Shown here piece after piece: positions 17,353 through 54,490 of a stretch of DNA of 64,000 nt. A model generated the notes under the pieces. The model worked only from the letters and a program-made list of their open reading frames with translations, ran no database searches and was not told the origin of the DNA. The translations under genes were made by a program, and so were the position numbers. How positions within the stretch are numbered: the first letter of the stretch is position 1; each line of letters begins with the position of its first letter. Source of the stretch: Oopsacas minuta (taxonomy: Eukaryota; Animalia; Porifera); contig JAKMXF010000321.1 of the NCBI GenBank assembly GCA_024704765.1, positions 620,001-684,000 on the forward strand, written 5' to 3'.

Positions 17353-20300
17353 ATGGAATCAGAATTAGAAGCAGCAGAACGAGTAGAATCTAATGAATTA
17401 GATGAACTTCTGACTTCTTGTATGGATCTATTAGATTTAAACATAACAGATCAGTTGACAGCTAGGAAATACCAGCAAGAATTAATTGAACAATGTTTCA
17501 AACAAAATAGCATAATATTCCTCGGTACAGGCACAGGCAAGACCTATATTGCCGTAGAAGTCATCAAGAGATTCAAGTCTCAAATATTAGGAAATTTCTA
17601 TGATCCAGATAGCAAAGAACGAACCGAGATCAAACGAACTTTTTTTCTGGTGAATATGGTTCCTCTTGCTATCCAACAAGCTGCATATATAAAAACACAC
17701 TTAGGTAGTAAATTTCGCGTTAAGAGAGTTATAGGAGCTGATATGGATGAATCATGGGATGCAAATCATTGGCAATGCGAATTCCAACAAAATCACGTTT
17801 TTGTATTAACTGGGGAGATATTACGTAAATTACTAGTTAGCGTTACTATTAAAATGCGAGATATAAATCTATTGATATTTGATGAAGCTCATCATGTTTC
17901 AAAAGATGACATTTACAAACAAATAATGGAAATATACCACAAAGAACGGAGAGAAGACAGTCACGTACAGACTAGAATAATCGGCTTAACCGCTTCACTA
18001 CTAAATGAGAAGAATATGGAACGTAAACTTGATGACAAACTTGAAAAACTAGCTAGCATATACAACAGCACGATAATCACAGCTAAGAATTTCGTAGAGG
18101 TTGATGAGCATTGCGCTAGACCTGATTTCTCCACTATACCATACGTACCACTTACACTAGACCAGAGACATTCGAAATTAAAATGTAGGCTAGAAAATTT
18201 CTCCAATTTTATTGAAGCATGTGGTGGTGATAAATGGAAAGCTATCACTAACACTAGTAGTGCTGCTTCCAAGATAGCAACCATACTTGGTACTAACCAT
18301 ATATTCCAGAAAGAACAAAACTTTGAAATCAAAACATTACAATGTGTCAAAAAACTAGGCAATAAATTACAAGTTGTTGTCGAACAGCTTGGACCAAGAA
18401 TAGCATTTTCATTTGCAGAAAATCTCCGAAACAAATTGTTAAAATATATCTTAACAATAGAAGTTGATCACATACAATCAGCTGTTAGCTGCCTGCTATC
18501 TATCATATCTAGCTATCTAAACAGTTGGGAAGGATCTGGACCTAAATTAAGTGACGTATCAGATAAAGTTACTGTGTTTTGTCATGAATTGAAGTATACA
18601 AGTCAAACGGAGAAATTTTGCGGAATAGCATTCATAAAAGATAGAGTTATAGCATACATGCTGAATCTCTACCTTAACCAATTAACTGCAAATGAGAAAG
18701 AGCTGTCACACATCAGAAGTAGTCACTGTACTGGACAATCTCCTAGTGCTCTATTCCCTGAAGTTTTCTTCGATAGTAACAGTCAAATATCTTTATTAGA
18801 AAAATTCAGAAAAGGTGAATTAAATTTCTTACTGGCTACAGAGGTATTGTTAGAAGGATTCAATATGCCACAGTGTAATTTGGTAATGACATTTGATAGA
18901 ATAGATCATTTCAGATATTTCACTCAATCTAGAGGGCGTGCCAGGGCTAAAGGGGGACTATACAAGTATCTTGTTCCTGCAGATGATGTGGTGGTTTGCC
19001 ATAAAGAGTTGGAAAAATATGACCAGTTTGAATTATCCCTACGCTCCTTCGTTCTAGAAAACTTTGTATATACAGAGAAAGAGTATATAGAACCTAAGAA
19101 TATCCCCAGTCCATTGACAACTAATAAAGGAGCTTCTATTACATATGAACAGGCAGTTTCTTATGTATACCAGTATTGTCAAAACTTGGTCGATGGTGTT
19201 AACCTGGACCAGTTTACTGTTTGGGCCCCCGTGTTCAGGATATACCGACGTGAGGAGATCGGGGATAATGACAAGTTCTTCTGTGTTATTTCAATGCCTA
19301 AATGTTGTTACGCACTTACTGAGACAGTTACAAGCGAGTTTTGGGTCGATAGCAAACGAGCAGCTCAGAGACACGCTGCACTTAATGTATGTAAGAAACT
19401 TTATGAATTGAATGAAATTGATGAGTTACTACAGCCTAAATATAGATTAATTAAACTATTCAAACAGAAAAAGAAGGGAGCATCAGCTCAACGAATGGAC
19501 TATCGTGGTAGGAAGACATACGATATTATTATACCTAATTCACTACAAAAACGCTGTGACAAAAATTCACCGGATAAAACAACTCGCTACTACCTATACC
19601 CTATCCGCATAACAAGAACACTTTACACTAATACATATACAATGGGTATTCTATCAACAAATCTTTGGAAAGTTCTCCCTCCTTCATTCATGTTGAAAGT
19701 TGGTTTATATGATGTTGAGGTTGAACTGATAGAACATATAGAGATTGATCTTACATCAGAAAAACTAGCACTATTATTGAATTGCTATGAAATATTAATC
19801 AAATCAATATTCCCTCTCCCATCTAAACATCTTGAATTTTCCTCAAAAACTGATTGTATTAAGGAATATATTATTGTTCCTATCAATGGTTTTGCAGATT
19901 ACTCAATTGACTATGAAAGAGTCAAAACTATCCTCCAAACAATTCCAAACGAAAAACCAAATCCAATAAATCCACAATTGGAGCCGAGGGAGTATGAAGG
20001 AATGTTTATTAAAAAGAATTATTGTTCTAAATTTGATTCTGACCAATATAAAGTTGTGCGGGCAGGTAAAAGTGTTACTATCGACTCTGAGTTTACAGAC
20101 GAAGACAAAGCAGAATCTTATCGAGGGTATTTCAAGGATAAATACGGAGTTGAAATGACTGTAAAAGATCAACCTTTCTTAGAAGTAGTGCCGTATAAAT
20201 TTGTATTACCAAGTTACACACGTAAATCAGGAACTATAGATATTGATAATGTTAAAACGAAGAGACGAAATACAATTATTCTATTCCCAGAGATAGTAGA

Positions 20301-20864
20301 TGAGTTGTTACTCTATAGGAATGTCACCCCAGACCTATTACTGCTACCTTCTATTCTACACAAGATTGAATCATTTTTGTTAGTTATTGAATTCAGGGAA
20401 AAATTGTATCCGGATATTGATGCTCATTTCCTAGATTTAAATCATCTCTACAGTGCTTTAACCCTCAGGAGATGTCAGGAAGAATTAGACTTAGAAAGAT
20501 TAGAATTCCTGGGTGATACTTGTCTCAAATTCTTAACCTGTCTATCTCTATTTTGCTGTAGTATAACTGCAAGTCAAGCTTTACTCACTCTAAGGAAATC
20601 TATATGTGTAAGTAACAAGCAATTGGTAGAGATAGCTGTTAAGAAAGATATGAATCTACCTGCTTATATGCGAGGACGTGAATTTGTAGCTAAGTGTAAT
20701 TGGCTGCCTCCGCGTGTAGTTCCGACACAGGAAATTATGAATAGAGAAATAGTTGATAGCGATAATACACTAATATCGGATAAAATGGAGATCGCTAGCA
20801 GTAATGCTGACTCTGTTAAGGCCAGTGAGGAGATAACGGATATGGAAATTGAAAGTGTTCAAGC

Positions 20865-20896
<32 letters not shown>

Positions 20897-22026
20897 CTAC
20901 TACTACTACTACTACTACTACTACAACAGATCAACAAGCTATGGATACCACCAGCAAGCAGGTTGATACCAATACCATAGATAAATCTAATACAGATGAC
21001 GTCACTAAAGTCTTTCCACCAGATTCTTCCTATTTGAGACAATCTCTTGCTAATAAGTCAATAGCAGATTCATTTGAGTCTATAATAGGATCAATATTAA
21101 TAAGCGGTGGGATACCAGTTGCAATGAACTTCCTATACAAATACGGTAAGAATGAATTATTTCTTACTATTGAAGGAACCCCATTGGATTTGAATGTTCC
21201 TGTCGGGATACCTGCTAAACCCTCTGATTTTCAAGATCCATTCCATCTATTCTTACAACATGGTGATTGGCTGAGAAAAATATTCTCTTACACTACGCCT
21301 ATAGTTGAATGGAATGCATCTCATAAATCCTTCTACGAGAAAAATCATCAGAAAGATATAAGACTATTAGCAAGAGAGAAATTGAAAATGCGAGAGTCTT
21401 TAACACAAGGACATGAAGCTATCCTATTAGAAGCATTAACTCATGATTCTTATAACTTGGGTACTGTATCACTAACAAGGAGTTATCAGAGACTGGAGTT
21501 CTTAGGAGATGCTGTACTGGATTACCTTGTCACTACATACTTAATGTGCTATGCTCCTAAATCCTACCAACCTAAAGATTTACATATTATGAGAGCGTGT
21601 GTTGTATCTAATAGGAATTTTGCTAGATTGGCTGTAGACAGTGATATAGCTTCAGATTTGATATTTTCAAATCAACACTTAGGGAAGGAAATTGCGGATT
21701 TTACAGATTACATTTTATGTGATTCTAGCAACCAAGTGAAATTCTACAGACAAGAATTAGCATACTTATTAGAACAAAAGAGAGTGAAATCAAAATTCAA
21801 ACTTAAAGATAAACCAATCAGTAAGCTAGCAAAAGCTCCAAAAGCTCTAGGAGATATTTTTGAGTCTACAGCCTGTGCTGTATTCCTAATCTCAGACTTT
21901 AACCTTGTAACTGTATGGGAGTGTTTGGGTGGTTCGCTACGTGATAGCATTGAACAATTCTTAGAGGCTTATAAGTCTACAAAAGTTATGGTTTCGAAGA
22001 ATAAAATTCCTGAGGCAAATTCCTGA
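17353..22026 (+). CDS. Dicer-family endoribonuclease, intronless, 1557 aa: DExD/H helicase, helicase-C, DUF283, PAZ, RNase IIIa, RNase IIIb; no C-terminal dsRBD
   Basis: GTGTGKT, DEAH, QSRGRARA; DUF283 (SKRAAQRHAALNVCKKL); PAZ (YFKDKYG..DQPFLEV..LFPEI); ERLEFLGDT + IADSFES; QRLEFLGDAVLDY + KALGDIFES. Orthology (Dicer1 vs a lineage-specific paralog) not determined. Confidence 0.95.
20866..20928 (+). repeat. Coding trinucleotide repeat (ACA)10(ACT)9(ACA)2 = 21 Thr in the RNase IIIa insert
   Basis: Read directly. Confidence 0.95.
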
Positions 22027-22497
22027 GGCAAATGCCTATCAAATATAGGTCATACTTAGTTGTTGTGTTTTGTTGTTGTGATGAAAAATTAACTAATTAT
22101 TCTATAATTAAATAAGTATATGAATACTAGCAGTAATGTAAATGGGAGTTAATAACCGTCATTATGATCAATTGCTCCTTAAAGATCAAAAGGAATCGTG
22201 ACGCCCAATTTCCACATTTTTTACACTTTTTATTCAAGAATAAAGATTTGTGTATTTGCATTTATTCAATTAAACTATTTGCCTTACTGTATTGTGAAGT
22301 TTTATCCATTGACTTACAAATTTAAATACAGGTCATTATCACATGGTAGCCTTTATCCGCCACAAATCAATTACTTTTCTACTAATCACACACTTTTATT
22401 GATAATAACAAATATAGCATACACAACTAAAAAGAGCAACAATAATATACAACACCTCATCAAGGGTAACACAAGAGGGTATATTTACATATGTATA

Positions 22498-22989
22498 TTA
22501 TTCAAGAATATAGTCATACATCAAATAGCCATTATCTTCACTACTGTAAGTCTGGTCCTTATGGTTACCTTGACATATGCTAACTGTATCAGGTGGCATC
22601 ATTTCATCATCCCAGTACTTATCTGCATCCAATAGTTGAATCCTGAATTCTAGCCAATCTTCCTTGCCGAATTCCAGCCATTCATTCCAGTCAGGATTCA
22701 GAGTTTCGTTTATGGTTATAGTTTTGCGAGTATTTTTATGTAACCGTGTATCGTATGCATCTACTACCACATATGGATCTGGTAAGTTAAACGGTCCGTC
22801 AGTGTCCCTTAATTCTCTCGCATACTTCACATAGATCTTTAACTTTCCGTTTACTGGCGAGAATGTTTGTCCATCTTTGGTAGAGTTTTGAGGTATTTTA
22901 ATTCCTTCTGTTTCATCTTTCCCAATTGCAGCAGTAGTAACACTGATACCAACTATCATCATAGTTAGTATTAATACTTTTGCGATCAT
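22498..22989 (-). CDS. Secreted stand-alone C2-domain protein, type A (perforin-C2-like)
   Basis: Signal peptide MIAKVLILTMMIVGISVTTAA; C2 motifs DTDG..PDPYV, ETLNPDWNE and LDADKYWDD. Confidence 0.85.
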   Translation of the reverse strand: MIAKVLILTMMIVGISVTTAAIGKDETEGIKIPQNSTKDGQTFSPVNGKLKIYVKYARELRDTDGPFNLPDPYVVVDAYDTRLHKNTRKTITINETLNPDWNEWLEFGKEDWLEFRIQLLDADKYWDDEMMPPDTVSICQGNHKDQTYSSEDNGYLMYDYILE

Positions 22990-23907
22990 AGTTACCTTGA
23001 GTCTGAGTTTGGTATTATTCCGTGTATAATATATAAATTGAAACATTCTTATATACTTGAACAGACAATTTACAAAAATTCCGCTTTTCCCGTCATATCA
23101 CAAAACTATTTTAGATGATTAAATATCTTTTATGAAAATATATCTAAGTAATTCTATTACAATCATAGAATAAGCAGAGTGATGACCCTGTGTGTAGTGC
23201 GTGTCATTACAGTTAGAAATATTTTCTAATTTCTTAGACAGAATAATATTATCAGAAAATGGTACATATTTCTAGAATTCTACATCCGTATTGTACGATC
23301 TTTGATGGACGAACTTTTCTGGCTCATACAGTAGGACTCGGTAAGAAGTACTTTGTATTTCTTATATCATTATAATGCAATACCTAGGCGGTTAAAACGT
23401 TACTAATTTGTGTTTCCCAAAAGAGGTACTTAAATCCGAGTACTAATGCGTTTTATTGGTAAACTTGATCAATCGAAAACTGCTTGTTACAGCTTGTATC
23501 TATTTATATTACCTAAGTTGAGAGCTCTAATTGGTTTTTAGCGGTTCGAATTACGCTTTTACTTTAATAATTTGGTTAAAATTCAAAACACTGCAAAGCT
23601 AAACTGTTAATTGCTTGGAAATTATAGCTCTTATCAGCATTTTGCCATCCCAATAAGAATACCGCGTTTTTCTCTTCAGTTTCGAACTCCTATATATTTG
23701 ATTTTGCAACTTTCAATAATTCGAATAATCATTAATTCGAACAATTTATTTCTCGTGACACCAAAGTAACAGTCATCGGCTGTCACACAATAACAGCTAG
23801 CATAGGGTCGTAGGAACTTGCGCGGCAGATGTGGCCTTCGCCGCTCGGGGCCCGCGCCAATATTTTTTCTATACTACTCCATAATTACCTTACTGATGTT
23901 TGTAGTA

Positions 23908-23994
23908 CAGTCAACACTCGTCATTTCGAACACGAATATATCGAAGAATTTTGTAGAGGTACCTTAAACTTCGATATAACGGGAGATGACTTTG
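23908..23994. mobile_element. Short Tc1/pogo-type MITE
   Basis: TA-CAGTCAACACTCGTCATTTCGAA ... TTCGATATAACGGGAGATGACTTTG-TA. Confidence 0.55.
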
Positions 23995-24355
23995 TACATT
24001 ATCTCAGGTTTAGAATTATAGTTAATAATGGGGACTAGGCCCAACCAGGTTCCTGAACAACTACTATTGGCTAGCTGTTAGGAAATAATCTTTAAGATCA
24101 TTGAAATATTAAAAATATGTGAACATACATGACCAAACCTACTACGAGGAAATTACATTCAAATATTGTAAGTTTTGAGAAATGAGAAATATTTCTGACT
24201 GTAATGACACGCACTACACACAGGGTCATCACTCTGCTTATTCTATGATTGTAATAGAATTACTTAGATATATTTTCATAAAAGATATTTAATCATCTAA
24301 AATAGTTTTGTGATATGACGGGAAAAGCGGAATTTTTGTAAATTGTCTGTTCAAG

Positions 24356-24363
24356 TATATAAG
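24356..24363 (+). promoter_or_regulatory. Putative TATA box (TATATAAG) of the C2 genes, conserved upstream of all four copies
   Basis: TTCAAGTATATAAGAATG lies ~60 nt before the ATG and is retained in both diverged promoter types. Confidence 0.45.
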
Positions 24364-24421
24364 AATGTTTCAATTTATATATTATACACGGAATAATACC
24401 AAACTCAGACTCAAGGTAACT

Positions 24422-24958
24422 ATGATCGCAAAAATATTAATACTAACTATGATGATAGTTGGTATCAGTGTTACTACTGCTGCAACTTTAACTGTGGAAA
24501 GAGAAGTTTCCAGATCTCACGAACAAGAAAGTGTACAGAAAAGAGAGACTCAAGGAAGTGGATCTAACTCGAGCACGAATGGACTTCAAGGCCCAATAGA
24601 ATATGGTTACTTAATAATCTATATAAAGTATGCTGTCGGTTTGTCGGATACTGACGGGGTGGGAAACTTACCAGATCCATATGTAGTATTAAATGCATAC
24701 GATAGGTGGGGTAATCTATACATAGGGCAAACTAGTTACGTACAGGGTACTGTGAATCCAGCTTGGTATGAAGTGTTCTATTTTGGTACAAACTATTGGA
24801 GCGAAGTCAGAATTCAAGTGTTTGATGAGGATTTCCTTTACTGGGATGACGTAATGACTCCAGTAGGTTATTTAAGTCTTACGCCAGGTTACCATTATAA
24901 TTATGTTTTCCTGACTAACGGCTATGGTTATGTAGTGTTTGACTATTATCTTATTTAA
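24422..24958 (+). CDS. Secreted stand-alone C2-domain protein, type B (pro-region with KR site)
   Basis: Same signal peptide; VQKR dibasic site; DTDG..PDPYV, GTVNPAWYE and FDEDFLYWDD. Confidence 0.85.
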   Translation: MIAKILILTMMIVGISVTTAATLTVEREVSRSHEQESVQKRETQGSGSNSSTNGLQGPIEYGYLIIYIKYAVGLSDTDGVGNLPDPYVVLNAYDRWGNLYIGQTSYVQGTVNPAWYEVFYFGTNYWSEVRIQVFDEDFLYWDDVMTPVGYLSLTPGYHYNYVFLTNGYGYVVFDYYLI

Positions 24959-25773
24959 GAGATGTAAACTTCCCTCCTTGTGTTACCCTTGTAGAGGTGT
25001 TGTATATTATTGTTGCTCTTTTTAGTTATATGTGCTACATTTTGTAATTATCAATAAACAGTGTGTGATATCTATTAATTTACAATTAGGTTATAACAGT
25101 TTGCAGTTAACTCTGTTTAATTTGTGAAGTTATGCGGATGATCCATACCCATATATAGGCAAAGAGATAATACAAAACAGTTTGTATAAACTTGAATATT
25201 ATCAGGCTAGGCTCGATCCCAGCTTGAGGCTTCTCATACTCTATAAATCGAATAATTTATGAGGCGAAAATTATTATTTAATTGCTTTTGTATATGTATA
25301 ACCTCGTTATCGCCTATCACATAATTTACATACCATTATAAACCTAATACATTTTCATGAGCAAATTTTAAAAGTTCACAAGTGTTACAAATTGTCACAT
25401 CAAAATCATATCCCGAGGTGAAATCTGCCGGCCACTTTAAAGCCTTCGACAATTTCCAGCTCTTAATCTATAAAACGGCGTGGGCTGTAGAGCGAAGACA
25501 GAAAAATACACAATAAACAAATATACAAAAGGCACTTAGGTCTATGTACTGAGTATTTCCCTGTAGTATGTCGACACAGCAATAAATTCTTTTACAAGTG
25601 AAGTTCACGAAAATTGTACATTTACCCTTGATAAGGCTTCCAGCATGTGTAACATATATTATTATGTACATATTCGTCTCCAGTAGAATTGGATACACAC
25701 TTCCCAAAATATGTATAACCTTTCGGACCCGTTCGGATTATCGAGGTCTGTCTCCACTGTATCTATATACACG

Positions 25774-26394
25774 TTAGGGTGTCCCAAAAAAATCGAAATT
25801 TTGAAAGTTTATGGGGGACCCCCTAAGAAGTTTCTGTGTCATAAAATGATTGTGGAAAAAATTCAGGTATTTATGAAGTGATTTAGGGTCCCTCACAATG
25901 GCTTTGTAAATTATATTTTACACCTGTTTTTTAACAATTTCAAAATTTAATTTTTTGCTAGAAACTTGCTTTAAAATGCTAACCCGGGTGAATCGACGAT
26001 GCAGATTTCAGATTTACCATCAGAAATTTGTTACTCCAACTATGTCTGAGCTAAATTTCATTTAATCTATTAATAATATACAATGAATTACAAAATATTT
26101 TACTTCTTGAAAAAAATATATAAATTGTACAGATAACAAATTTCTGATGGTAAATCTGAAATCTGCATCGTCGATTCACCCGGGTTAGCATTTTAAAGCA
26201 AGTTTCTAGCAAAAAATTAAATTTTGAAATTGTTAAAAAACAGGTGTAAAATATAATTTACAAAGCCATTGTGAGGGACCCTAAATCACTTCATAAATAC
26301 CTGAATTTTTTCCACAATCATTTTATGACATAGAAACTTCTTAGGGGGTCCCCCATAAACCTTTCAAAAATTCGATTTTTTTGGGACACCCTAA
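25774..26394. mobile_element. Foldback element / long-TIR MITE: ~260-bp arms (25774-26033 / 26134-26394), 100-bp spacer
   Basis: TTAGGGTGTCCCAAAAAAATCGAA ... TTCGATTTTTTTGGGACACCCTAA, near-perfect arms. A TA TSD is possible; superfamily unresolved. Confidence 0.85.
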
Positions 26395-26644
26395 TACGTA
26401 GGTATGGATCCTCCCGAAACTGTCCCGATTAAGCAGAGTTTACTACAACCAGTTGGAACCTAATCTCTACACACAATCAGGCACGAGCCAAAGCCCCTTG
26501 GAACTATAACTTAAATAATTGTAGTCTATAGATATCACACACTGTTTATTGATAATTACAAAATGTAGCATATATAACTAAAAAGAGCAACAATAATATA
26601 CAACACCTCTACAAGGGTAACACAAGGAGGGAAGTTTACATCTC

Positions 26645-27181
26645 TTAAATAAGATAATAGTTAAACACTACATAACCATAGCCGTTAGTCAGGAAAATAT
26701 AATTATAATGGTAACCTGGCGTAAGACTTAAATAACCTACTGGAGTCATTACGTCATCCCAGTAAAAGAAATCCTCATCAAACACTTGAATTCTGACTTC
26801 GCTCCAATAGTTTGTACCAAAATTGAACACTTCATACCAAGCTGGATTCACAGTACCCTGTACGTAACTAGTTTGCCCTATGTATAGATTACCCCACCTA
26901 TCGTATGCATTTAATACTACATATGGATCTGGTAAGTTTCCCGGCCCGTCAGTATCCGACAAACCGACAGCATACTTTATATAGATTATTAAGTAACCAT
27001 ATACTATTGGGCCTTGAAGTCCATTCGTGCTCGAGTTAGATCCACTTCCTTGAGTCTCTCTTTTCTGTACACTTTCTTGTTCGTGAGATCTGGAAACTTC
27101 TCTTTCCACAGTTAAAGTTGCAGCAGTAGTAACACTGATACCAACTATCATCATAGTTAGTATTAATATTTTTGCGATCAT
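26645..27181 (-). CDS. Secreted C2-domain protein, type B' (6 aa differ from B)
   Basis: Reverse complement matches 24422-24958 except for 7 nt. Confidence 0.85.
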   Translation of the reverse strand: MIAKILILTMMIVGISVTTAATLTVEREVSRSHEQESVQKRETQGSGSNSSTNGLQGPIVYGYLIIYIKYAVGLSDTDGPGNLPDPYVVLNAYDRWGNLYIGQTSYVQGTVNPAWYEVFNFGTNYWSEVRIQVFDEDFFYWDDVMTPVGYLSLTPGYHYNYIFLTNGYGYVVFNYYLI

Positions 27182-28379
27182 AGTTACCTTGAGTCTGAGT
27201 TTGATATTATTCTTTATGAAGATATAAATTGAAACATTCTTATATACTTGAACACGACAAATTACAAAAAGTCCGCTTTCCCATCATATCCCAATACTGT
27301 TACATGCTTCTGAAATATATCCATAAGTATTTCCATTACTATCACAGTAAAAGCAGAGTGCAAGTCATAACACAATCAAATATAATTTATCATTTCTTAC
27401 ATAAACTTACAGTTGTCGAGTGTAAGCTATCGTGTCGTATGGTATTTTGTCATAATTATTTTTGTATGTTAAAGCTAGGGTTGTTCAGTTATAATTATTA
27501 ACCTTACTTGTTGTTTCCTTCAAACCTGTGCTCCAATTAGTTATGATCTAGTCATGTATTGTACTTTACTCTCATATTAAGATCCTAATCAAGATCCATT
27601 TACGTATTGAGGGTCGTTTATTACCCGAATTATCTTACACTTCTGATAAAATTGTGCAATTTTTAAGCAATAGGAGATGACATAATCTGATTGCACTAAC
27701 ACAGATTAATCAACTTGCTCTTACTTTGATAGAATTTGAAATACTTATAGAGCAGGCACTTTTTCTATCAAAGTAAGAGCAAGTTGATTAATCTGTGTTA
27801 GTGCAATCAGATTATGTCATCTCCTATTGCTTAAAAATTGCACAATTTTATCAGAAGTGTAAGATAATTCGGGTAATAAACGACCCTCAATACGTAAATG
27901 GATCTTGATTAGGATCTTAATATGAGAGTAAAGTACAATACATGACTAGATCATAACTAATTGGAGCACAGGTTTGAAGGAAACAACAAGTAAGGTTAAT
28001 AATTATAACTGAACAACCCTAGCTTTAACATACAAAAATAATTATGACAAAATACCATACGACACGATAGCTTACACTCGACAACTGTAAGTTTATGTAA
28101 GAAATGATAAATTATATTTGATTGTGTTATGACTTGCACTCTGCTTTTACTGTGATAGTAATGGAAATACTTATGGATATATTTCAGAAGCATGTAACAG
28201 TATTGGGATATGATGGGAAAGCGGACTTTTTGTAATTTGTCGTGTTCAAGTATATAAGAATGTTTCAATTTATATCTTCATAAAGAATAATACCAAACTC
28301 AGACTCAAGGTAACTATGATCGCAAAAGTATTAATACTAACTATGATGATAGTTGGTATCAGTGTTACTACTGCTTCAA
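27118..28379. repeat. 617-bp-arm palindrome (27118-27734 / 27763-28379), 28-nt loop; promoter type 2 shared by B' and A'
   Basis: Coordinate sum 55497. The inner ~530 bp is perfect by eye; 3 mismatches lie in the outer part. Confidence 0.95.
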
Positions 28380-28807
28380 TTGGGAAAGATGAAACTGAAG
28401 GAATTAAAATACCTCAAAACTCTACCAAAGATGGACAAACATTCTCGCCAGTAAACGGAAAGTTAAAGATCTATGTGAAGTATGCGAGAGAATTAAGGGA
28501 CACTGACGGACCATTTAACTTACCAGATCCATATGTGGTAGTAGATGCATACGATACACGGTTACATAAAAATACTCGCAAAACTATAACCATAAACGAA
28601 ACTCTGAATCCCGACTGGAATGAATGGCTGGAATTCGGCAAGGAAGATTGGCTAGAATTCAGGATTCAACTATTGGATGCAGATAAGTACTGGGATGATG
28701 AAATGATGCCACCTGATACAGTTAGCATATGTCAAGGTAACCATAAGGACCAGACTTACAGTAGTGAAGATAATGGCTATTTGATGTATGACTATATCCT
28801 TGAATAA
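28316..28807 (+). CDS. Secreted C2-domain protein, type A' (1 aa differs from A)
   Basis: Matches the reverse complement of 22498-22989 except for 5 nt. Confidence 0.85.
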   Translation: MIAKVLILTMMIVGISVTTASIGKDETEGIKIPQNSTKDGQTFSPVNGKLKIYVKYARELRDTDGPFNLPDPYVVVDAYDTRLHKNTRKTITINETLNPDWNEWLEFGKEDWLEFRIQLLDADKYWDDEMMPPDTVSICQGNHKDQTYSSEDNGYLMYDYILE

Positions 28808-28987
28808 TATACATAAGTAAATATACCCTCTTGTGTTACCCTTGATGAGGTGTTGTATATTATTGTTGCTCTTTTTAGTTGTGTATGCTATATTTGTTAT
28901 TATCAATAAAAGTGTGTGATTAGTAGAAAAGTAATTGATTTGGTCTCACATGAAATTATGACAGGATTCCCTTGTTCTATACATGTA

Positions 28988-46153: not shown

Positions 46154-47281
46154 ATGTGTAACAATCCATATATTGGAGTTCATTACTATCTGAGATATCT
46201 TGCGAGGATAGAGTCCTACACCTTTCAGGGTTTAGGACTAATCTACACTATATTATGCATCTTGTGGTTACCTTACGTCATAGCTAGCATATATTCACAA
46301 ATTAGAAATAAAAGAAGACTTATTACTTTAATGCATCTAGATAGTAGTCGTGATTATACAAATCGTCTCTTCTTGCAAAAGGAATCTATATTCCGGTATG
46401 TTATCTTTCTTGTATTCCTTTGTTTTGAGCTGATCTACTGTATGCATATCAGTATACTTGGAATTAAATATTTCACTACCTCATTTAAAGATATCATGAT
46501 CCCGTTTGGTCCAAACTGCTCCCTAGATTCGAGCACAGCCATTGGCATTTCATATGGCAGTAGATTTGTTAGTATTCTTTTGCATTCATCCAACATATTC
46601 GGGAGGTTTTCGTTATTCATGATGATTTGGCTATTTGGTGCTTCTCTTCTCCATTTGAGTTTTGCCGCCAGAAATAAGCTGAGAGTGAAAGTAATTATTC
46701 GCTTCATCTTGTTAGGAATAGTTATTAATCTTATCGTGGTGATATTTGCCTATATTCCGTATACTAGAATATTCGGTATATTGGCAGATACCTTTTTGGA
46801 TCAAATCAGTATCTTTATTATACTCTACATTGCTAAGAAGAGATTCTTTCCTGCCATGAATAGTCGTGTTATAGATGCATATCATCTCCATAATACTAAT
46901 GTGTATCTACAACAGAAAAGATTGTTCAAACAGTATAAAGTGCTTGTCTTTGTTTTCTTGTTCACAATTGAAGTGTATATTCTGAAGAATTTTGTCAACT
47001 TTAATGAGATATCTAATTCTATTTATTATAATCTTTGTTGGTTTCATGTGACCATTCATCCCCGTATGCTCACATTGTCAGCATCTATGAAGAATACTCT
47101 TAGTCAAATCAGCAAAAACTTTATCCTATTTGTTAACTTGATTGAGATTATTGTGTTTTGTATTTGTATAGTTGTAAACTTAAACATTATATATGTTACC
47201 GCCAAAGGATTCTTTAAGAGAAGGTTTTATGACAGAGAAAGGTATCGTTATCAAATGTTTTCTAACCCCTTATTGTCTTGA
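46154..47281 (+). CDS. Orphan ~7TM membrane protein
   Basis: About seven hydrophobic segments; clear paralog at 48430-49551. Confidence 0.7.
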   Translation: MCNNPYIGVHYYLRYLARIESYTFQGLGLIYTILCILWLPYVIASIYSQIRNKRRLITLMHLDSSRDYTNRLFLQKESIFRYVIFLVFLCFELIYCMHISILGIKYFTTSFKDIMIPFGPNCSLDSSTAIGISYGSRFVSILLHSSNIFGRFSLFMMIWLFGASLLHLSFAARNKLRVKVIIRFILLGIVINLIVVIFAYIPYTRIFGILADTFLDQISIFIILYIAKKRFFPAMNSRVIDAYHLHNTNVYLQQKRLFKQYKVLVFVFLFTIEVYILKNFVNFNEISNSIYYNLCWFHVTIHPRMLTLSASMKNTLSQISKNFILFVNLIEIIVFCICIVVNLNIIYVTAKGFFKRRFYDRERYRYQMFSNPLLS

Positions 47282-48429: not shown

Positions 48430-49551
48430 TCAAGACAATAAGGGGTTGGAAAACATTTGATAACGATACCTTTCTCTGTCATAAAACCTTCTCTTGGCGG
48501 TGGCATACATAATGTTTAAATTTACAACTATGAAAATACAAAATATACTAAGATTAATCAAGTTACACAATATTAAACAGTAAAAGCTGATTTGATTCAG
48601 AAAATCCTTTGTAGAATCTGATAAAGCGAGCATAGGGAGATGATATGTGACATAAAACCAACAAAGATTTCTAGAGATTGATTGAAATACGACAAACAAG
48701 TTGAACAAGAAAATATCGCTCAAAATATACACTTCAATTGTGAATAAGAGGCCAAAGACTAGTACCTTATACTGTTGGAACAATCTTTTCTGATGTAGAT
48801 ACACATTAGTATTATGGAGATGATATGCATCTATAACACGACTATTCATGGCAGGAAAGAATCTCTTCTTAGCAATGTAGAGCACAATAAAGATACTAAT
48901 TTGATCTATATAGCTATGGGCAATAGTTCCGAACATCTTAGTATATGGGATAAGCTCAGTTACTAACACGATAAGATTAATAACTATTCCTAACAAAATG
49001 AAACAAATAACTACTTTCACTCTCAGCAAATTTCTAGCAGCAAAACTCAAATGAAGAAGAGAAGCACCAAATAGCCAAACCATCATAGAAAAGGAAAAAT
49101 ACCCGAACAAGATGGACACATTTTGAAGAATGCTAACGAATCTACTGTCATATGAAATGCCGATTACTGTGCTCGAATGTACGAAGCAGTTTGGCCCAAT
49201 AGGGATCAGAATATCTCTTAACGTGTTGAAATAAAATATTACTTCATATATATTCATGTTCATGCAGTAGAAGAGCTCCAAGCAAAGAAATACAAGGAAT
49301 AATACATACCGGAATATAGATTCTTTGAGCATGAATAGACGATTTGTATAATCACAACTACTATCTATATGCATTAACGTGACAAGACTTCTTTTGTTTC
49401 GTATTTGTGAGAATATGCTAGCTATGACGTAAGGTAACCAGAAGATGCATAATATAGTGTAGATTAGTCCTAACGCCTGAGACATGTAGAATTCTATACA
49501 TATAAGGTTGATCCCATAGTGATGACCTCCAATATATGAATTGTTAGACAT
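48430..49551 (-). CDS. Orphan ~7TM membrane protein (paralog of 46154-47281)
   Basis: Shared LHLSFAARN, YIAKKRFFPAMNSRVIDAYHLHNTNVYL and YDRERYRYQMFSNPLLS. Confidence 0.7.
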   Translation of the reverse strand: MSNNSYIGGHHYGINLICIEFYMSQALGLIYTILCIFWLPYVIASIFSQIRNKRSLVTLMHIDSSCDYTNRLFMLKESIFRYVLFLVFLCLELFYCMNMNIYEVIFYFNTLRDILIPIGPNCFVHSSTVIGISYDSRFVSILQNVSILFGYFSFSMMVWLFGASLLHLSFAARNLLRVKVVICFILLGIVINLIVLVTELIPYTKMFGTIAHSYIDQISIFIVLYIAKKRFFPAMNSRVIDAYHLHNTNVYLHQKRLFQQYKVLVFGLLFTIEVYILSDIFLFNLFVVFQSISRNLCWFYVTYHLPMLALSDSTKDFLNQISFYCLILCNLINLSIFCIFIVVNLNIMYATAKRRFYDRERYRYQMFSNPLLS

Positions 49552-51190: not shown

Positions 51191-51931
51191 AATAGCAAAT
51201 TAATTAACAGAAATTATTAATATACTAAATAATGCATCTGTGTAATTGAAGAAGTAGTACCAATTTAAATTTTATCTAGATACCTCGGTTTCGATTCTCG
51301 CTCGCTTGGATAATCCCTGTTCGGAATTTCTCTTATCAATACGTATTATGCTGGAAATCAGGAATTATAATCAGAATACAAGGAATTTGTTAATAATGTT
51401 AGACATGGATTATGCCAGGTAATCAGGTATACAAAGTTAATTTTATGTATACTGGTTATAGTTAGCATATTTCTAATCTGTTAAATTTACACTTGCATTA
51501 GTAATATTAGAGAGGTAATATTTTGCTAATTAGATTTAGAATTTCAAAAAATTACCTACTCCAGTACATACAATACGTAAATACAGAGTTACCAAACATG
51601 AATGAACGAACGTGTCTAAAGGTAATTGATCACTATAGTTATTGGATATAGTGATAATATGGATTGTTCACAGCTGTATTCACTATATCTCTACTAATGT
51701 GTGTAGCGACAAGCATACAACTCTATAAATCTCAGCTTGTAAATATCCTAGAGCAAAGAAATTGGGTGTGATATCATTATACATACCTATAAACACTTTT
51801 CACTGTAGGAGTACTCACATATTTATAATATGCAAATCCTCTACGGGATATTGAAAGTAAGCAGCAGTCAAATAAAACAAGTAATCGAACAAATAGTATA
51901 AATACAATACTAATACTAAACTTACTTAACT

Positions 51932-54490
51932 ATGAAGATACAAATCATATCAGTTGTTCTATTACTCTGTATCTACCTGCAGGTAACAATCTGTAAACGA
52001 AGATTAGATGTCTTAGGATTATATCCAAGAAGTGGGGATGGATGGACAGGGCCGTTCGTAACATACACTGCTGAACTAGCTCTCAAACATATCAATGAGA
52101 ATACAAACCTTCTCAATGATTATCAAATCGTAATAGACTGGAAGAATACACAATGTGATGGAGGTATCGCTCTCAAACAATTCATAGACGCTCTGGGTAA
52201 GAATCAGAATCAAACATATCTGGCTGTGCTCGGAGCAGGATGCTCTGTTGCCACAAGTCAAGTGGCTGTAATTTCTTATCGGTATGGACTTGCACAAATA
52301 ACTTTTGCATCAACAGCCCCAAATCTAGGCAATAACGTGATGTACCCGAGATTCGTTAGAGGAGTACCATCTGATTTGAAAGTAGTTCATGCTCGTGCAA
52401 GATTCTTACAGCAAAACAACTGGAAACGTGTTGCCATCATAAATGAACAAGACCCGACATTCGTATCGAGCTCTCATCACATGGAAAATGTATTGAGCCT
52501 ATTGAATGTAGATTATAAGGTGGAAGACATCACTCTAGATGGGACAGTACCATTGGAACAACAAGTGAGTATTTTAGCAAATAACCTCAGAGGATACAGA
52601 ATAATCATAGCCAACATGTATGAAGATGCTGCAATAAAATTATTCTGTTATCTCTACAAACAAAAGGAGAAATATCTACTGCCAAATATCGCTACATGGT
52701 TATTCCTTGGTTGGTTTACAGATCAGTGGCATGACAAACAAGGTGTGTTAGAAGAAGTTGGTTGCACCGCAGAACAAATAGCAACAGCTTCTAACGGAGC
52801 TTTGGGCTTCTTAGCGACACACAGCAAAAAGCACTTTATGGGACAAACAAACAACAACCAAGTAACCATTGCAAACAGAACGACAGCTGAACTATTCCAA
52901 GAGTACAAAGAGCTCATTCTTGAACGAATAAATAATGATACCGTTAGGTTTGACAGGGAATTTGATGTTTATGACGCGTATGTGTACGATTCCATTTGGA
53001 CATTAGCTCTCGCTATGCAAAACGCTTCAGATAAAGGTTTTAATCTTACCGAAATTTCACAAAAACAGAATCTTGAAGACACTAACATATTCAGTAAGAA
53101 CAGTGAATTCTCGAGTGCTGTATACAATGGTATGTTGTATCAAAACTTTATCGGTTGGACTGGCAATGTTAGGTTCAGTGGTCATGAAAGATTCTATCCT
53201 CAGGTGCAAATACTGGAATTTGTAGATGGGAATCTTGTCTATCGAGGAGATTGTGAGAACATTCCATACTTTGACGATTTCACAGAGGATAGTATAAATA
53301 GCATCATGTGTAGTTTGGATGAGACGTTTACTTATTGGAACAAAGAAACAGCTACAGACGGGATAAATAACATGTATACATCAGGAGCAATCGTTGCCTT
53401 AGTATTCCTGCTATCACTCTGTATAGGTGCATATGTCACATTCCTTATAATAGTGATATTAGTAGGGAAATGGGAAAAACTGGAATCCATTTATGAATCA
53501 TCACCCATTATCACTTGTATCATCTTAGCAGGGAACTATTTCTTGTTGATAGCTGGAGTACTGTATGTATTTACTGATAGATTTGTAGGACACGAAAACC
53601 CGTTACTCATGAGCAGCAGCTTCGAATCATTTACCACAGAAATGTGTGGAACATCAGGCTGTAAATTTCTGTGCATGTTACCTGTGATTTTCGCGTTACT
53701 TGGGTCCAGCCTCATATTTGGTGGGATGATTGGGAAAGCTAGTACTATATATTTGTATGCAATTAAGAATTCACTAAAACACTATCTAAAGATTCTGTTT
53801 CTAATCTCAAATTGTTTGCCAGTGTTCTTCATCTGTGTTGATATTATTCTCGTGATAATCTGGGGGTCAGTGAGTTTTCTAGTTGTAAAATCTGAAGTTC
53901 TACCTACTGGCATAGACAATGAGCCATATATCCGTGTATTACAGTGTGGAATGTCTACACAACAAGAAACTGCAACCTCAATATTCATTGTTTTCCTAAT
54001 CATATACAAAATTATGATAATAGTAATCGGTTTGGTAATGGCATACTTTCTTAGAGATATTAAAAAGAAGGATCTACGTTACTGGGATACAATTACTTGG
54101 ACCATGTACACCATGTCGATATCTACCTTCGTGCTTTTTCTATTTCTCTTTTTGATTGAGGATTTCAATGCAAAACATGCAGTAATTTGTGTGCTCGTGT
54201 TAGTCACTGTTACGACATCAGCAAGCATTACAGGACTCCCTCCTGTCTACTACATATTTAAGTACCCACACCCTGGATATGAGGCTATAATTATCCCTAA
54301 AGGGCTTCGAAATACAGAGCCAAAGGACATTTTGATGAAACACCAAATTATTAATCTAGAGAGTGATAATGCTCAGTTGAATTGTGATGTTGAGGATCTG
54401 AAGAATGAGAACAAATTTTTGAAACAACGCAAAGGTGTGTTAGAAGAGAATAAATCTCAGTCTAATATGGATACTCCTGATATTAATTGA
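51932..54490 (+). CDS. Class C GPCR, GABA-B receptor-like (copy 1)
   Basis: Signal peptide; Venus flytrap (NTQCDGG, GAGCSVAT, STAPNL, YAYDSIW-like YVYDSIW, FIGWTGNVRF); 7TM; C-terminal coiled coil; no cysteine-rich domain. Confidence 0.9.
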   Translation: MKIQIISVVLLLCIYLQVTICKRRLDVLGLYPRSGDGWTGPFVTYTAELALKHINENTNLLNDYQIVIDWKNTQCDGGIALKQFIDALGKNQNQTYLAVLGAGCSVATSQVAVISYRYGLAQITFASTAPNLGNNVMYPRFVRGVPSDLKVVHARARFLQQNNWKRVAIINEQDPTFVSSSHHMENVLSLLNVDYKVEDITLDGTVPLEQQVSILANNLRGYRIIIANMYEDAAIKLFCYLYKQKEKYLLPNIATWLFLGWFTDQWHDKQGVLEEVGCTAEQIATASNGALGFLATHSKKHFMGQTNNNQVTIANRTTAELFQEYKELILERINNDTVRFDREFDVYDAYVYDSIWTLALAMQNASDKGFNLTEISQKQNLEDTNIFSKNSEFSSAVYNGMLYQNFIGWTGNVRFSGHERFYPQVQILEFVDGNLVYRGDCENIPYFDDFTEDSINSIMCSLDETFTYWNKETATDGINNMYTSGAIVALVFLLSLCIGAYVTFLIIVILVGKWEKLESIYESSPIITCIILAGNYFLLIAGVLYVFTDRFVGHENPLLMSSSFESFTTEMCGTSGCKFLCMLPVIFALLGSSLIFGGMIGKASTIYLYAIKNSLKHYLKILFLISNCLPVFFICVDIILVIIWGSVSFLVVKSEVLPTGIDNEPYIRVLQCGMSTQQETATSIFIVFLIIYKIMIIVIGLVMAYFLRDIKKKDLRYWDTITWTMYTMSISTFVLFLFLFLIEDFNAKHAVICVLVLVTVTTSASITGLPPVYYIFKYPHPGYEAIIIPKGLRNTEPKDILMKHQIINLESDNAQLNCDVEDLKNENKFLKQRKGVLEENKSQSNMDTPDIN

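Follow-up and report, generated by a model that had tools for sequence, protein, structure and literature searches.

Nested inverted repeats pair two promoter types with two coding types in a cluster of secreted C2 genes of Oopsacas minuta

Four C2 genes and their nested inverted repeats

According to our analysis, a stretch of 64,000 nucleotides (nt) from the glass sponge Oopsacas minuta (contig JAKMXF010000321.1; hereafter the window, within which all coordinates are given) carries at 22363-28942 a cluster of four intronless open reading frames in the order A<-P1->B ... B'<-P2->A', where P1 and P2 are the promoter regions from which the two head-to-head gene pairs are read. The coding sequence (CDS) of gene A lies at 22498-22989 on the minus strand and that of gene A' at 28316-28807 on the plus strand, both encoding 163 amino acids, while gene B (24422-24958, plus strand) and gene B' (26645-27181, minus strand) encode 178 amino acids each. 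Every one of the four proteins has a signal-peptide-like start, MIAK[V/I]LILTMMIVGISVTTA, followed by one Pfam C2 domain (PF00168; E values of 1e-11 to 5e-9, 36.8-44.9 bits against a cut-off of 22). Coordinates, orientation, domain, and protein starts thus agree with the arrangement of four secreted C2 genes put forward in the original prediction.

A repeat search of the window resolves the locus into four nested inverted-repeat pairs with arm identities of 97-99%. The outermost pair, A/A', joins 22363-23020 to 28285-28942 (658 nt, 99%), and B/B' joins 24391-25075 to 26528-27212 (685 nt, 99%); the P2 pair joins 27097-27734 to 27763-28400 (638 nt, separated by a loop of 28 nt), and the P1 pair 22905-23224 to 24187-24506 (320 nt, with 962 nt between the arms). 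The A block (22363..23020, minus strand) consists of the 3' untranslated region (UTR), the CDS, and a shared 5' hinge, and the A' block (28285..28942, plus strand), to which it is 99% identical, stops 32 nt past AATAAA. The B block (24391..25075, plus strand) has the same three parts, stops 17 nt past AATAAA, and is 99% identical to the B' block (26528..27212, minus strand). The hinge is a segment running from -30 to +63 relative to the ATG, that is, the 5'UTR and the signal-peptide codons, and is found at 24392..24484 (plus strand) in gene B and at 22927-23019 (minus), 27119-27211 (minus), and 28286-28378 (plus) in the other genes.

The left arm of P1 (22926..23224, minus strand) contains the core promoter, with TATATAAG at -66, the 5'UTR, and the signal-peptide codons of A, and the right arm (24187..24485, plus strand) drives gene B. 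Between them lies the P1 centre (23225..24186), 962 nt of unique sequence, of which only the B-side end (24129-24202) retains homology, of ~72%, to a P2 arm (28044-28125). In P2, the left arm (27118..27734, minus strand) drives B' and the right arm (27763..28379, plus strand) drives A', with the 28-nt loop at 27735..27762.

When the four copies are compared, promoter and coding parts give opposite groupings. The P1 arms differ at 2 positions in 299 nt, and at 1 in the ~235 nt of the promoter arm proper, while the inner 530 nt of the P2 left arm (27205-27734) are perfectly complementary to the right arm; these counts reproduce the predicted ones exactly. Over -300..-1, P1 and P2 agree in 81-87% of aligned columns, with ~70 gap columns in addition, against 99.7% between the two P2 arms. 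The claim that the two promoters are clearly diverged, by substitutions as well as indels, is therefore borne out, and their divergence exceeds that between A and A'. Between the modules, on the other hand, the A and A' coding sequences differ by 5 nt (6 across the whole block, 0.9%) and those of B and B' by 7 nt (9 across the block, 1.3%), again as predicted. Between A and B, the mature coding parts are far apart (nonsynonymous divergence, dN, 0.49; synonymous divergence, dS, 0.87; protein identity, 44%), whereas the 5'UTR, signal peptide, and 3'UTR are 87-100% identical.

The change from one grouping to the other is abrupt. In a four-way alignment read in 40-column windows, A equals B and B' equals A' (100%) upstream of the ATG, where P1 and P2 share 40-92%; from about codon 22 onward, A equals A' and B equals B' (98-100%), where A and B share 12-80%. 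Between these regions, the hinge is the same in all four genes except for codon 5, which has G in the A type and A in the B type, and for two private changes, and the promoter-type-specific bases begin only at -31 and upstream, beside the transcription start predicted from TATATAAG at -66/-65. Both switch points are thus confined to one 44-nt interval, between -31 and +13. The original prediction had located the switch in a block shared by the genes, with the 5'UTR following the promoter type and codon 5 following the coding type; we recovered a 33-nt block in which codon 5 does track the coding type, but the 5'UTR (-30..-1) is common to all four genes rather than promoter specific, a difference at -9 being private to B'. 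The signal peptides of A and B do not show a single synonymous difference in 21 codons (P = 1.7e-5 given a dS of 0.87), which argues that the DNA of the signal peptide has itself been homogenised, and that selection on the protein does not suffice as an explanation.

The locus was also inspected in reads of one sample, seen as contigs assembled at a word length k of 31, from an RNA-like run (X4) and from runs with Nextera adaptors, the four runs being designated X1-X4. Word depth in X4 is 270,000-600,000 on the C2 gene bodies, compared with ~226-305 on the 3' end of the neighbouring Dicer gene and ~12-22 in intergenic sequence, a contrast from which we take X4 to be RNA-like and the C2 genes to be very highly expressed. 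Variants private to A, A', B, and B' are all found in X4 contigs. In the P1 centre, the X4 contig (23184-24227) departs from the window, which X1-X3 match exactly, by 11 substitutions and one indel, and represents ~1% polymorphism or a second haplotype within one sample.

Probable inverted duplication and gene conversion, and the age of the copies

Three well-separated tiers of divergence coexist at the locus: the deep one between the mature parts of A and B, an intermediate one between module and module outside the near-identical blocks, and a shallow one of ~1% between coding pairs and 0-0.4% between promoter arms. The intermediate tier appears directly past the 99% B/B' block (which ends at 25075 and 26528), where the 3' flank of B (25085..25149, plus strand) is 77% identical over 66 columns to the flank of B' (26401-26464; z = 13.7 against shuffles), and it extends up to the insertion point of a foldback element of 621 nt. 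As judged from this alignment, the flank homology would mark the true age of the module duplication, and such a fall, from 99% to 77%, is classically left at the edge of a conversion tract that lies within an older duplication, which supports conversion. With the arms homogenised within pairs, the transcribed regions between pairs, and old homology of ~77% left outside the B/B' block, the two orthogonal homogenisation processes that had been proposed are upheld. The two P2 arms resemble each other significantly more than the paired coding blocks do (P = 0.003), as is expected of arms that lie just 28 nt apart.

The foldback element, which resembles a miniature inverted-repeat transposable element (MITE), occupies 25774..26394 in the spacer between the modules, with arms of 250 nt at 25783-26033 and 26134-26384, and is inserted exactly where the homology of the B/B' flanks ends. 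In the reads, it shows raised word depth, variant contigs, and loose ends, which would suggest that it belongs to a multi-copy family, and it is no part of the gene modules.

The flanks also bear on a different history, in which the whole module was duplicated in inverted orientation only recently, at the ~1% level, and one promoter was then replaced or rebuilt, through ectopic conversion from an unseen third promoter copy or through fold-back repair that created the P2 palindrome anew. The divergence of just ~1% within A/A' and B/B', which is like the variation in the P1 centre between runs, would fit such a history, and so would the young look of a P2 palindrome perfect over 530 nt around a 28-nt loop and the unequal reach of the arms, those of P2 extending to -570 and those of P1 stopping at -235, so that the distal P2 arm has no counterpart in P1. 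Homology was also looked for between the A-side of the P1 centre and P2, and none was found (z = -0.2). Yet the B/B' 3' flanks, which lie outside any promoter, are old as well; no further C2 paralogue or P2-like sequence occurs elsewhere in the window; two protein searches returned only the four window genes as close relatives; and conversion would still be needed to account for the identity of hinge and arms. We regard this history as unlikely. A word-based protein search with B likewise found the window's own cluster only.

Instead, we think that the locus was probably formed by inverted duplication, which occurred twice, and by subsequent gene conversion, with local homology deciding the choice of partner; both the order of these events and conversion as the homogenising process are what we infer from the data. 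A single gene with its promoter would first have been duplicated in inverted orientation, giving a head-to-head pair whose mature-coding parts then diverged deeply into A and B (dS ~0.87). The whole A<-P->B module would subsequently have been duplicated, again inverted; the unconstrained flanks of its two copies are by now ~20-25% different. In a third step, conversion between inverted repeats would have set in, with each segment pairing with its most similar partner. The promoter arms would convert within one palindrome, so that P1 and P2 drift apart as units, while in the mature coding part and 3'UTR, where A and B are too different to pair, A would convert with A' and B with B'. The hinge, which can pair with all three other copies, would be a member of both networks. 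The cluster of mismatches and indels between P1 and P2 at -31..-45 and the heterology between A and B from codon 22 would act as barriers to conversion tracts, and the two switch points would fall into one short interval because the barrier at -31..-45 is the same for A/A' and B/B' tracts, the arms being alike. Inverted duplication of a head-to-head pair with partner-specific conversion gives the matrix directly, and the contention that duplication cannot easily produce the pattern was thus overstated. On this account, the promoter-by-coding matrix is a static by-product of concerted evolution, and each protein type may be expressed from two differently regulated promoters.

Several points weigh against this account. 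The A/A' block ends without residual homology (older homology was looked for beyond it, and none was found; z = -1.4), so that the old duplication must end, by coincidence, within ~20-30 nt of the poly(A) site of A. The limits of both near-identical blocks almost coincide with those of the predicted transcript, which could point to a transcription-linked process instead of simple heterology barriers. Conversion is deduced from comparing sequences and not from direct demonstration in a population, outgroup, or pedigree, and the nearest relative, Vazella pourtalesii, is too distant (66% amino-acid identity in Dicer) to date the module duplication. Finally, the order of the four copies comes from the assembly alone, and assemblies of the SPAdes-hybrid type can mis-resolve 650-nt repeats at 99% identity.

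The match between blocks and transcripts leads to the proposal that extreme transcription of intronless genes itself drives conversion in A/A' and B/B', the homogenised unit being the mRNA, through transcription-associated breaks or an RNA or cDNA template. In its favour, the 5' switch adjoins the predicted transcription start, the blocks end 17 nt (B/B') and 32 nt (A/A') past AATAAA, and the genes are both intronless and covered in X4 at the depths given above. A control that supports conversion as such is provided in the same window by a tail-to-tail pair of intronless class-C G-protein-coupled receptor (GPCR) genes (51932-54490 and 59174-61729; 851 and 852 amino acids), which are 92-100% identical over +1..+2330 in a block that also starts 17 nt upstream of the ATG (51915-54266 and 59371-61746). 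Identity falls to 65-70% over the last 225 nt of the reading frame, and there is no homology outside, so that the pair appears from its sequence to hold a second conversion-type boundary. Since this block ends inside the reading frame, away from the poly(A) site, it also tells against transcript-sized units. Moreover, heterology would set the same boundaries at the C2 locus, where P1 and P2 are separated by their cluster of mismatches, a 55-nt indel follows the B' block, and the duplication has its outer edge; the blocks end without poly(A) remnants, and the start and poly(A) sites are predicted from sequence. We hold this proposal to be somewhat less likely still than a recent duplication; if it were true, highly expressed intronless genes would repair from or through their own transcripts.

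As for the assembly, the source genome is described as having been put together by SPAdes in hybrid mode from corrected PacBio reads, with k up to 99, followed by SSPACE (PMC10280926), and the copy order or the pairing of promoters with coding types could be a wrong path through the repeat graph or a fold-back chimera. The k=31 contigs break in the hinge (22955/23005) and do not link the markers of promoter type to those of coding type, which lie 42 nt or more away, and in X1-X3 no contig spans the junction of A and its flank. In X1 and X2, the A-type, B-type, and P2-arm contigs have ~2x the word depth of the P1 centre and B flank, a ratio that cannot separate a true duplicate from two haplotypes. 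An interpretation of the modules as haplotypes of one locus was rejected, as A and A' are flanked on their outer sides by two different single-copy genes, arranged as synteny would have them, and the P2 loop was likewise rejected as a sequencing adaptor after its sequence had been checked. An artefact is opposed by the lack of any N in the window and by those same outer flanks, whose two genes are the ones that synteny with Vazella predicts. As the genes on either side of P2 differ, no simple fold-back read can be involved, and the loop, which is no adaptor, is crossed by one contig (27225-27774) of X4, a run probably unused for the assembly. If the contig follows the final k=99 graph, every 99-mer in it should have been present in the input reads; on that premise, promoter type and codon 5 (56 nt apart) and codon 5 and mature type (51 nt apart) would be linked at the word level, and the two-by-two matrix would stand even with a wrong copy order. 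Variants of both copies are also present in the reads. We thus judge an artefact improbable. In X3, the collapsed P2 arms (27225-27734) reach 0.45x the depth of the single-copy P1 centre, as opposed to ~2x in X1 and X2; this may reflect a library bias against the long palindrome.

Synteny with Vazella pourtalesii and the question of inversion

The C2 cluster lies between Dicer and an enoyl-CoA hydratase (ECH) gene. Four contigs of Vazella pourtalesii from sponge metagenomes keep the order TatD-ECH-[C2 genes]-Dicer, with four or five C2 genes in a purely tandem array, all in direct orientation, in which no inverted repeats were detected. The nested palindrome is therefore, as far as these contigs indicate, specific to the lineage of the window. 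In a tree with the Vazella genes, only lineage-specific clades are obtained, with no one-to-one orthology for A or B. Within the Vazella array, the upstream regions and signal peptide group gene g2 with g4 (84-96%) and g3 with g5, while by its mature part g2 is nearest to g1 (90-100%), with g3 coming next and g4 last. Because the tandem array shows the same conflict, reassortment of promoter and coding parts at a conserved 5' block is a trait of the family that does not need inversion.

This comparison weighs against the suggestion, made in the original prediction, that inversion-type swapping of promoters and cassettes created the pattern, and against the corresponding idea that programmed inversion or the shuffling of cassettes reassigns C2 genes from one promoter to another. 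With its shared hinge and its four nested pairs of inverted repeats, the locus does superficially resemble the layouts of invertible promoters and shufflons. Logical enumeration nevertheless shows that each promoter is left with one A-type and one B-type gene whenever two hinges of opposite orientation recombine by inversion, and likewise after any inversion within the coding blocks, and since no inversion alters the pairing of promoter type with coding type, the locus is not a DNA switch. All four promoter-coding combinations are, moreover, present at once, with variants of all four genes in the RNA-like run. No recombinase reading frame was found in 20-31.5 kb, where the neighbours are Dicer, ECH, TatD, NHL, and other unrelated genes, and the reads list no strand-changing joints, a weak point as k=31 contigs cannot show them. 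In the Vazella tandem array, where the same mosaic is seen, inversion cannot act. We therefore consider such a system highly improbable, and a combinatorial expression or diversification system, as had also been envisaged, is unsupported on the same evidence. An origin from two pure palindromes (A<-P1->A and B<-P2->B) through one inversion was rejected too, given that A and A' would become direct repeats in the order A B A' B', which is not the observed nested order.

The Vazella contigs also differ among themselves. One individual lacks ~2.3 kb carrying one C2 gene (L004:7036-9450 versus L005:6962-7061), with breakpoints in homologous 3' parts of neighbouring paralogues or in the 3' flank, outside the hinge, which indicates, from the aligned contigs, unequal recombination between paralogues and no hotspot at the hinge. 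At the start of another contig (L001:1-4200), the TatD/WD40 genes are present in a palindromic copy (L001 1-1594, matching L004 1668-3261 in inverted orientation at 99.7%); L004 and L005 lack this copy, which is probably an artefact that fold-back in the assembly produced at the end of the contig.

Beyond the C2 cluster, the window, with a G+C content of ~35% and few introns, also encodes a tyrosine kinase, class-C GPCRs, and NHL proteins. Dicer (17353-22026) is encoded as 1557 amino acids in one uninterrupted reading frame, with a run of ~22 threonines between its RNase III domains; the Vazella orthologue has a shorter threonine run in the same place. An inverted pair of reading frames of 375 and 373 amino acids (46154-47281 and 48430-49551), with no Pfam match and 73-82% identity, looks, from that level of identity, like an older inverted duplicate that was not homogenised.

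The secreted C2 proteins and comparison with known systems

In the AlphaFold2 model of A, a disordered linker is followed by a C2 beta-sandwich at residues 46-163 (pLDDT 90-98), which Foldseek matches with a probability of 1.00 to many C2 structures of the calcium type, including cPLA2, extended synaptotagmin, PKC-epsilon, and SmC2P1. Across a family alignment of 27 sequences, D62, D64, D71, D121, D123, D127, and D128 (A numbering) are invariant or nearly so. A, A', B, and B' are accordingly predicted to be small secreted proteins with a signal peptide, a disordered linker, and a canonical calcium-type C2 domain. Database models of these proteins have 154 and 169 amino acids and start at Met10 (after 22963-22989, 24422-24448, and equivalents); they are probably nine residues short, because the MIAK start is kept in Vazella and yields a proper signal peptide.

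An exhaustive profile search returned 1267 relatives, and the best matches outside the window form two groups: sponge astacin-EGF-C2 proteins, such as XP_064387793 of Halichondria panicea, and small single-C2 proteins of 187-220 amino acids, in a cluster that includes Vazella pourtalesii transcripts. In a literature search on secreted or extracellular C2 proteins, the only mention found was of SmC2P1, a stand-alone C2 domain that is described as structurally closest to perforin C2 (PMC10400287). Like the window proteins, SmC2P1 is a small single C2 beta-sandwich with aspartate clusters in its loops, and its structures 3W56 and 3W57 align to the A model with a target-normalised TM-score of 0.83-0.85 at 23-24% sequence identity. 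However, they rank below cPLA2, E-Syt, and PKC-epsilon in Foldseek E value, and the profile search finds ferlins, synaptotagmins, and PKC first; with cPLA2, extended-synaptotagmin, and PKC-epsilon C2 domains matching as well or better, no specific kinship with the perforin type emerges.

The coding differences between B and B' are all nonsynonymous (7/7 nt: E60V, V80P by 2 nt, Y120N, L138F, V160I, and D174N), and two of the replacements adjoin calcium-binding loops, whereas those in the mature part between A and A' are all synonymous (4/4; Fisher P = 0.003-0.005 versus B/B'). Such counts hint that the B type alone is under diversifying or relaxed selection. For A versus B, positive selection was considered as well, but dN/dS, at ~0.55, does not show it.

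Secreted multigene families of the conotoxin or antimicrobial-peptide type combine constant leaders and UTRs with a hypervariable mature part. The C2 genes are similar to them in their conserved UTRs and signal peptide and their divergent mature domain, with 44% protein identity between A and B, but differ in having as their mature part a folded C2 domain, in which the calcium-ligand aspartates are conserved, rather than a short peptide, and in their dN/dS of ~0.55 between A and B. The four secreted proteins, whose stand-alone C2 domain is related to the C2 modules found in astacin-EGF-C2 proteins of sponges, merit attention for their very high expression in a glass sponge; candidate roles are calcium-dependent binding to the membranes of microbes or prey or to the animal's own syncytial membranes.

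In its layout, the closest precedent for the locus is hsp16-1/hsp16-48 of Caenorhabditis elegans (Russnak and Candido 1985, as related in PMC3966223), where small genes came to lie head to head after duplication and inversion, and where a module of 1.9 kb was duplicated as an inverted repeat around 416 bp of unique spacer, conversion being the favoured explanation for the identity of the modules. Both loci have the order A<-P->B ... B'<-P'->A'. The whole hsp16 module, including the promoter, is identical between copies, whereas in the sponge the promoters have diverged (81-87% plus indels) and the transcribed parts are 99% identical; in contrast to hsp16, each sponge promoter is homogenised only with its own opposite arm. 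The palindromes of sex chromosomes offer a second comparison, since their arms are kept >99% identical by intrachromosomal conversion (human Y P6, PMC3723533; primate X, PMC8981503), and inversions of their spacers are rare and leave the gene content unchanged (PMC3723533, PMC8981503). The process would be the same there, on a larger scale: sex-chromosome arms measure kilobases to megabases and have a single partner, while the sponge arms of 0.3-0.7 kb are nested, with two partner networks overlapping in a 93-nt hinge, and, unlike the sex-chromosome palindromes, lie in a gene-dense stretch flanked by Dicer and ECH.

The locus may thus serve as an unusually clean and small case of conversion partner choice partitioning a gene cluster, in which two overlapping networks would give promoter and coding parts opposite histories and generate a complete promoter-by-coding set without dedicated machinery, and it cautions against reading such layouts as switches. 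Set beside hsp16 and the sex-chromosome palindromes, the mechanism is of a known kind, and its twist is that promoter and transcribed parts choose their partners orthogonally.

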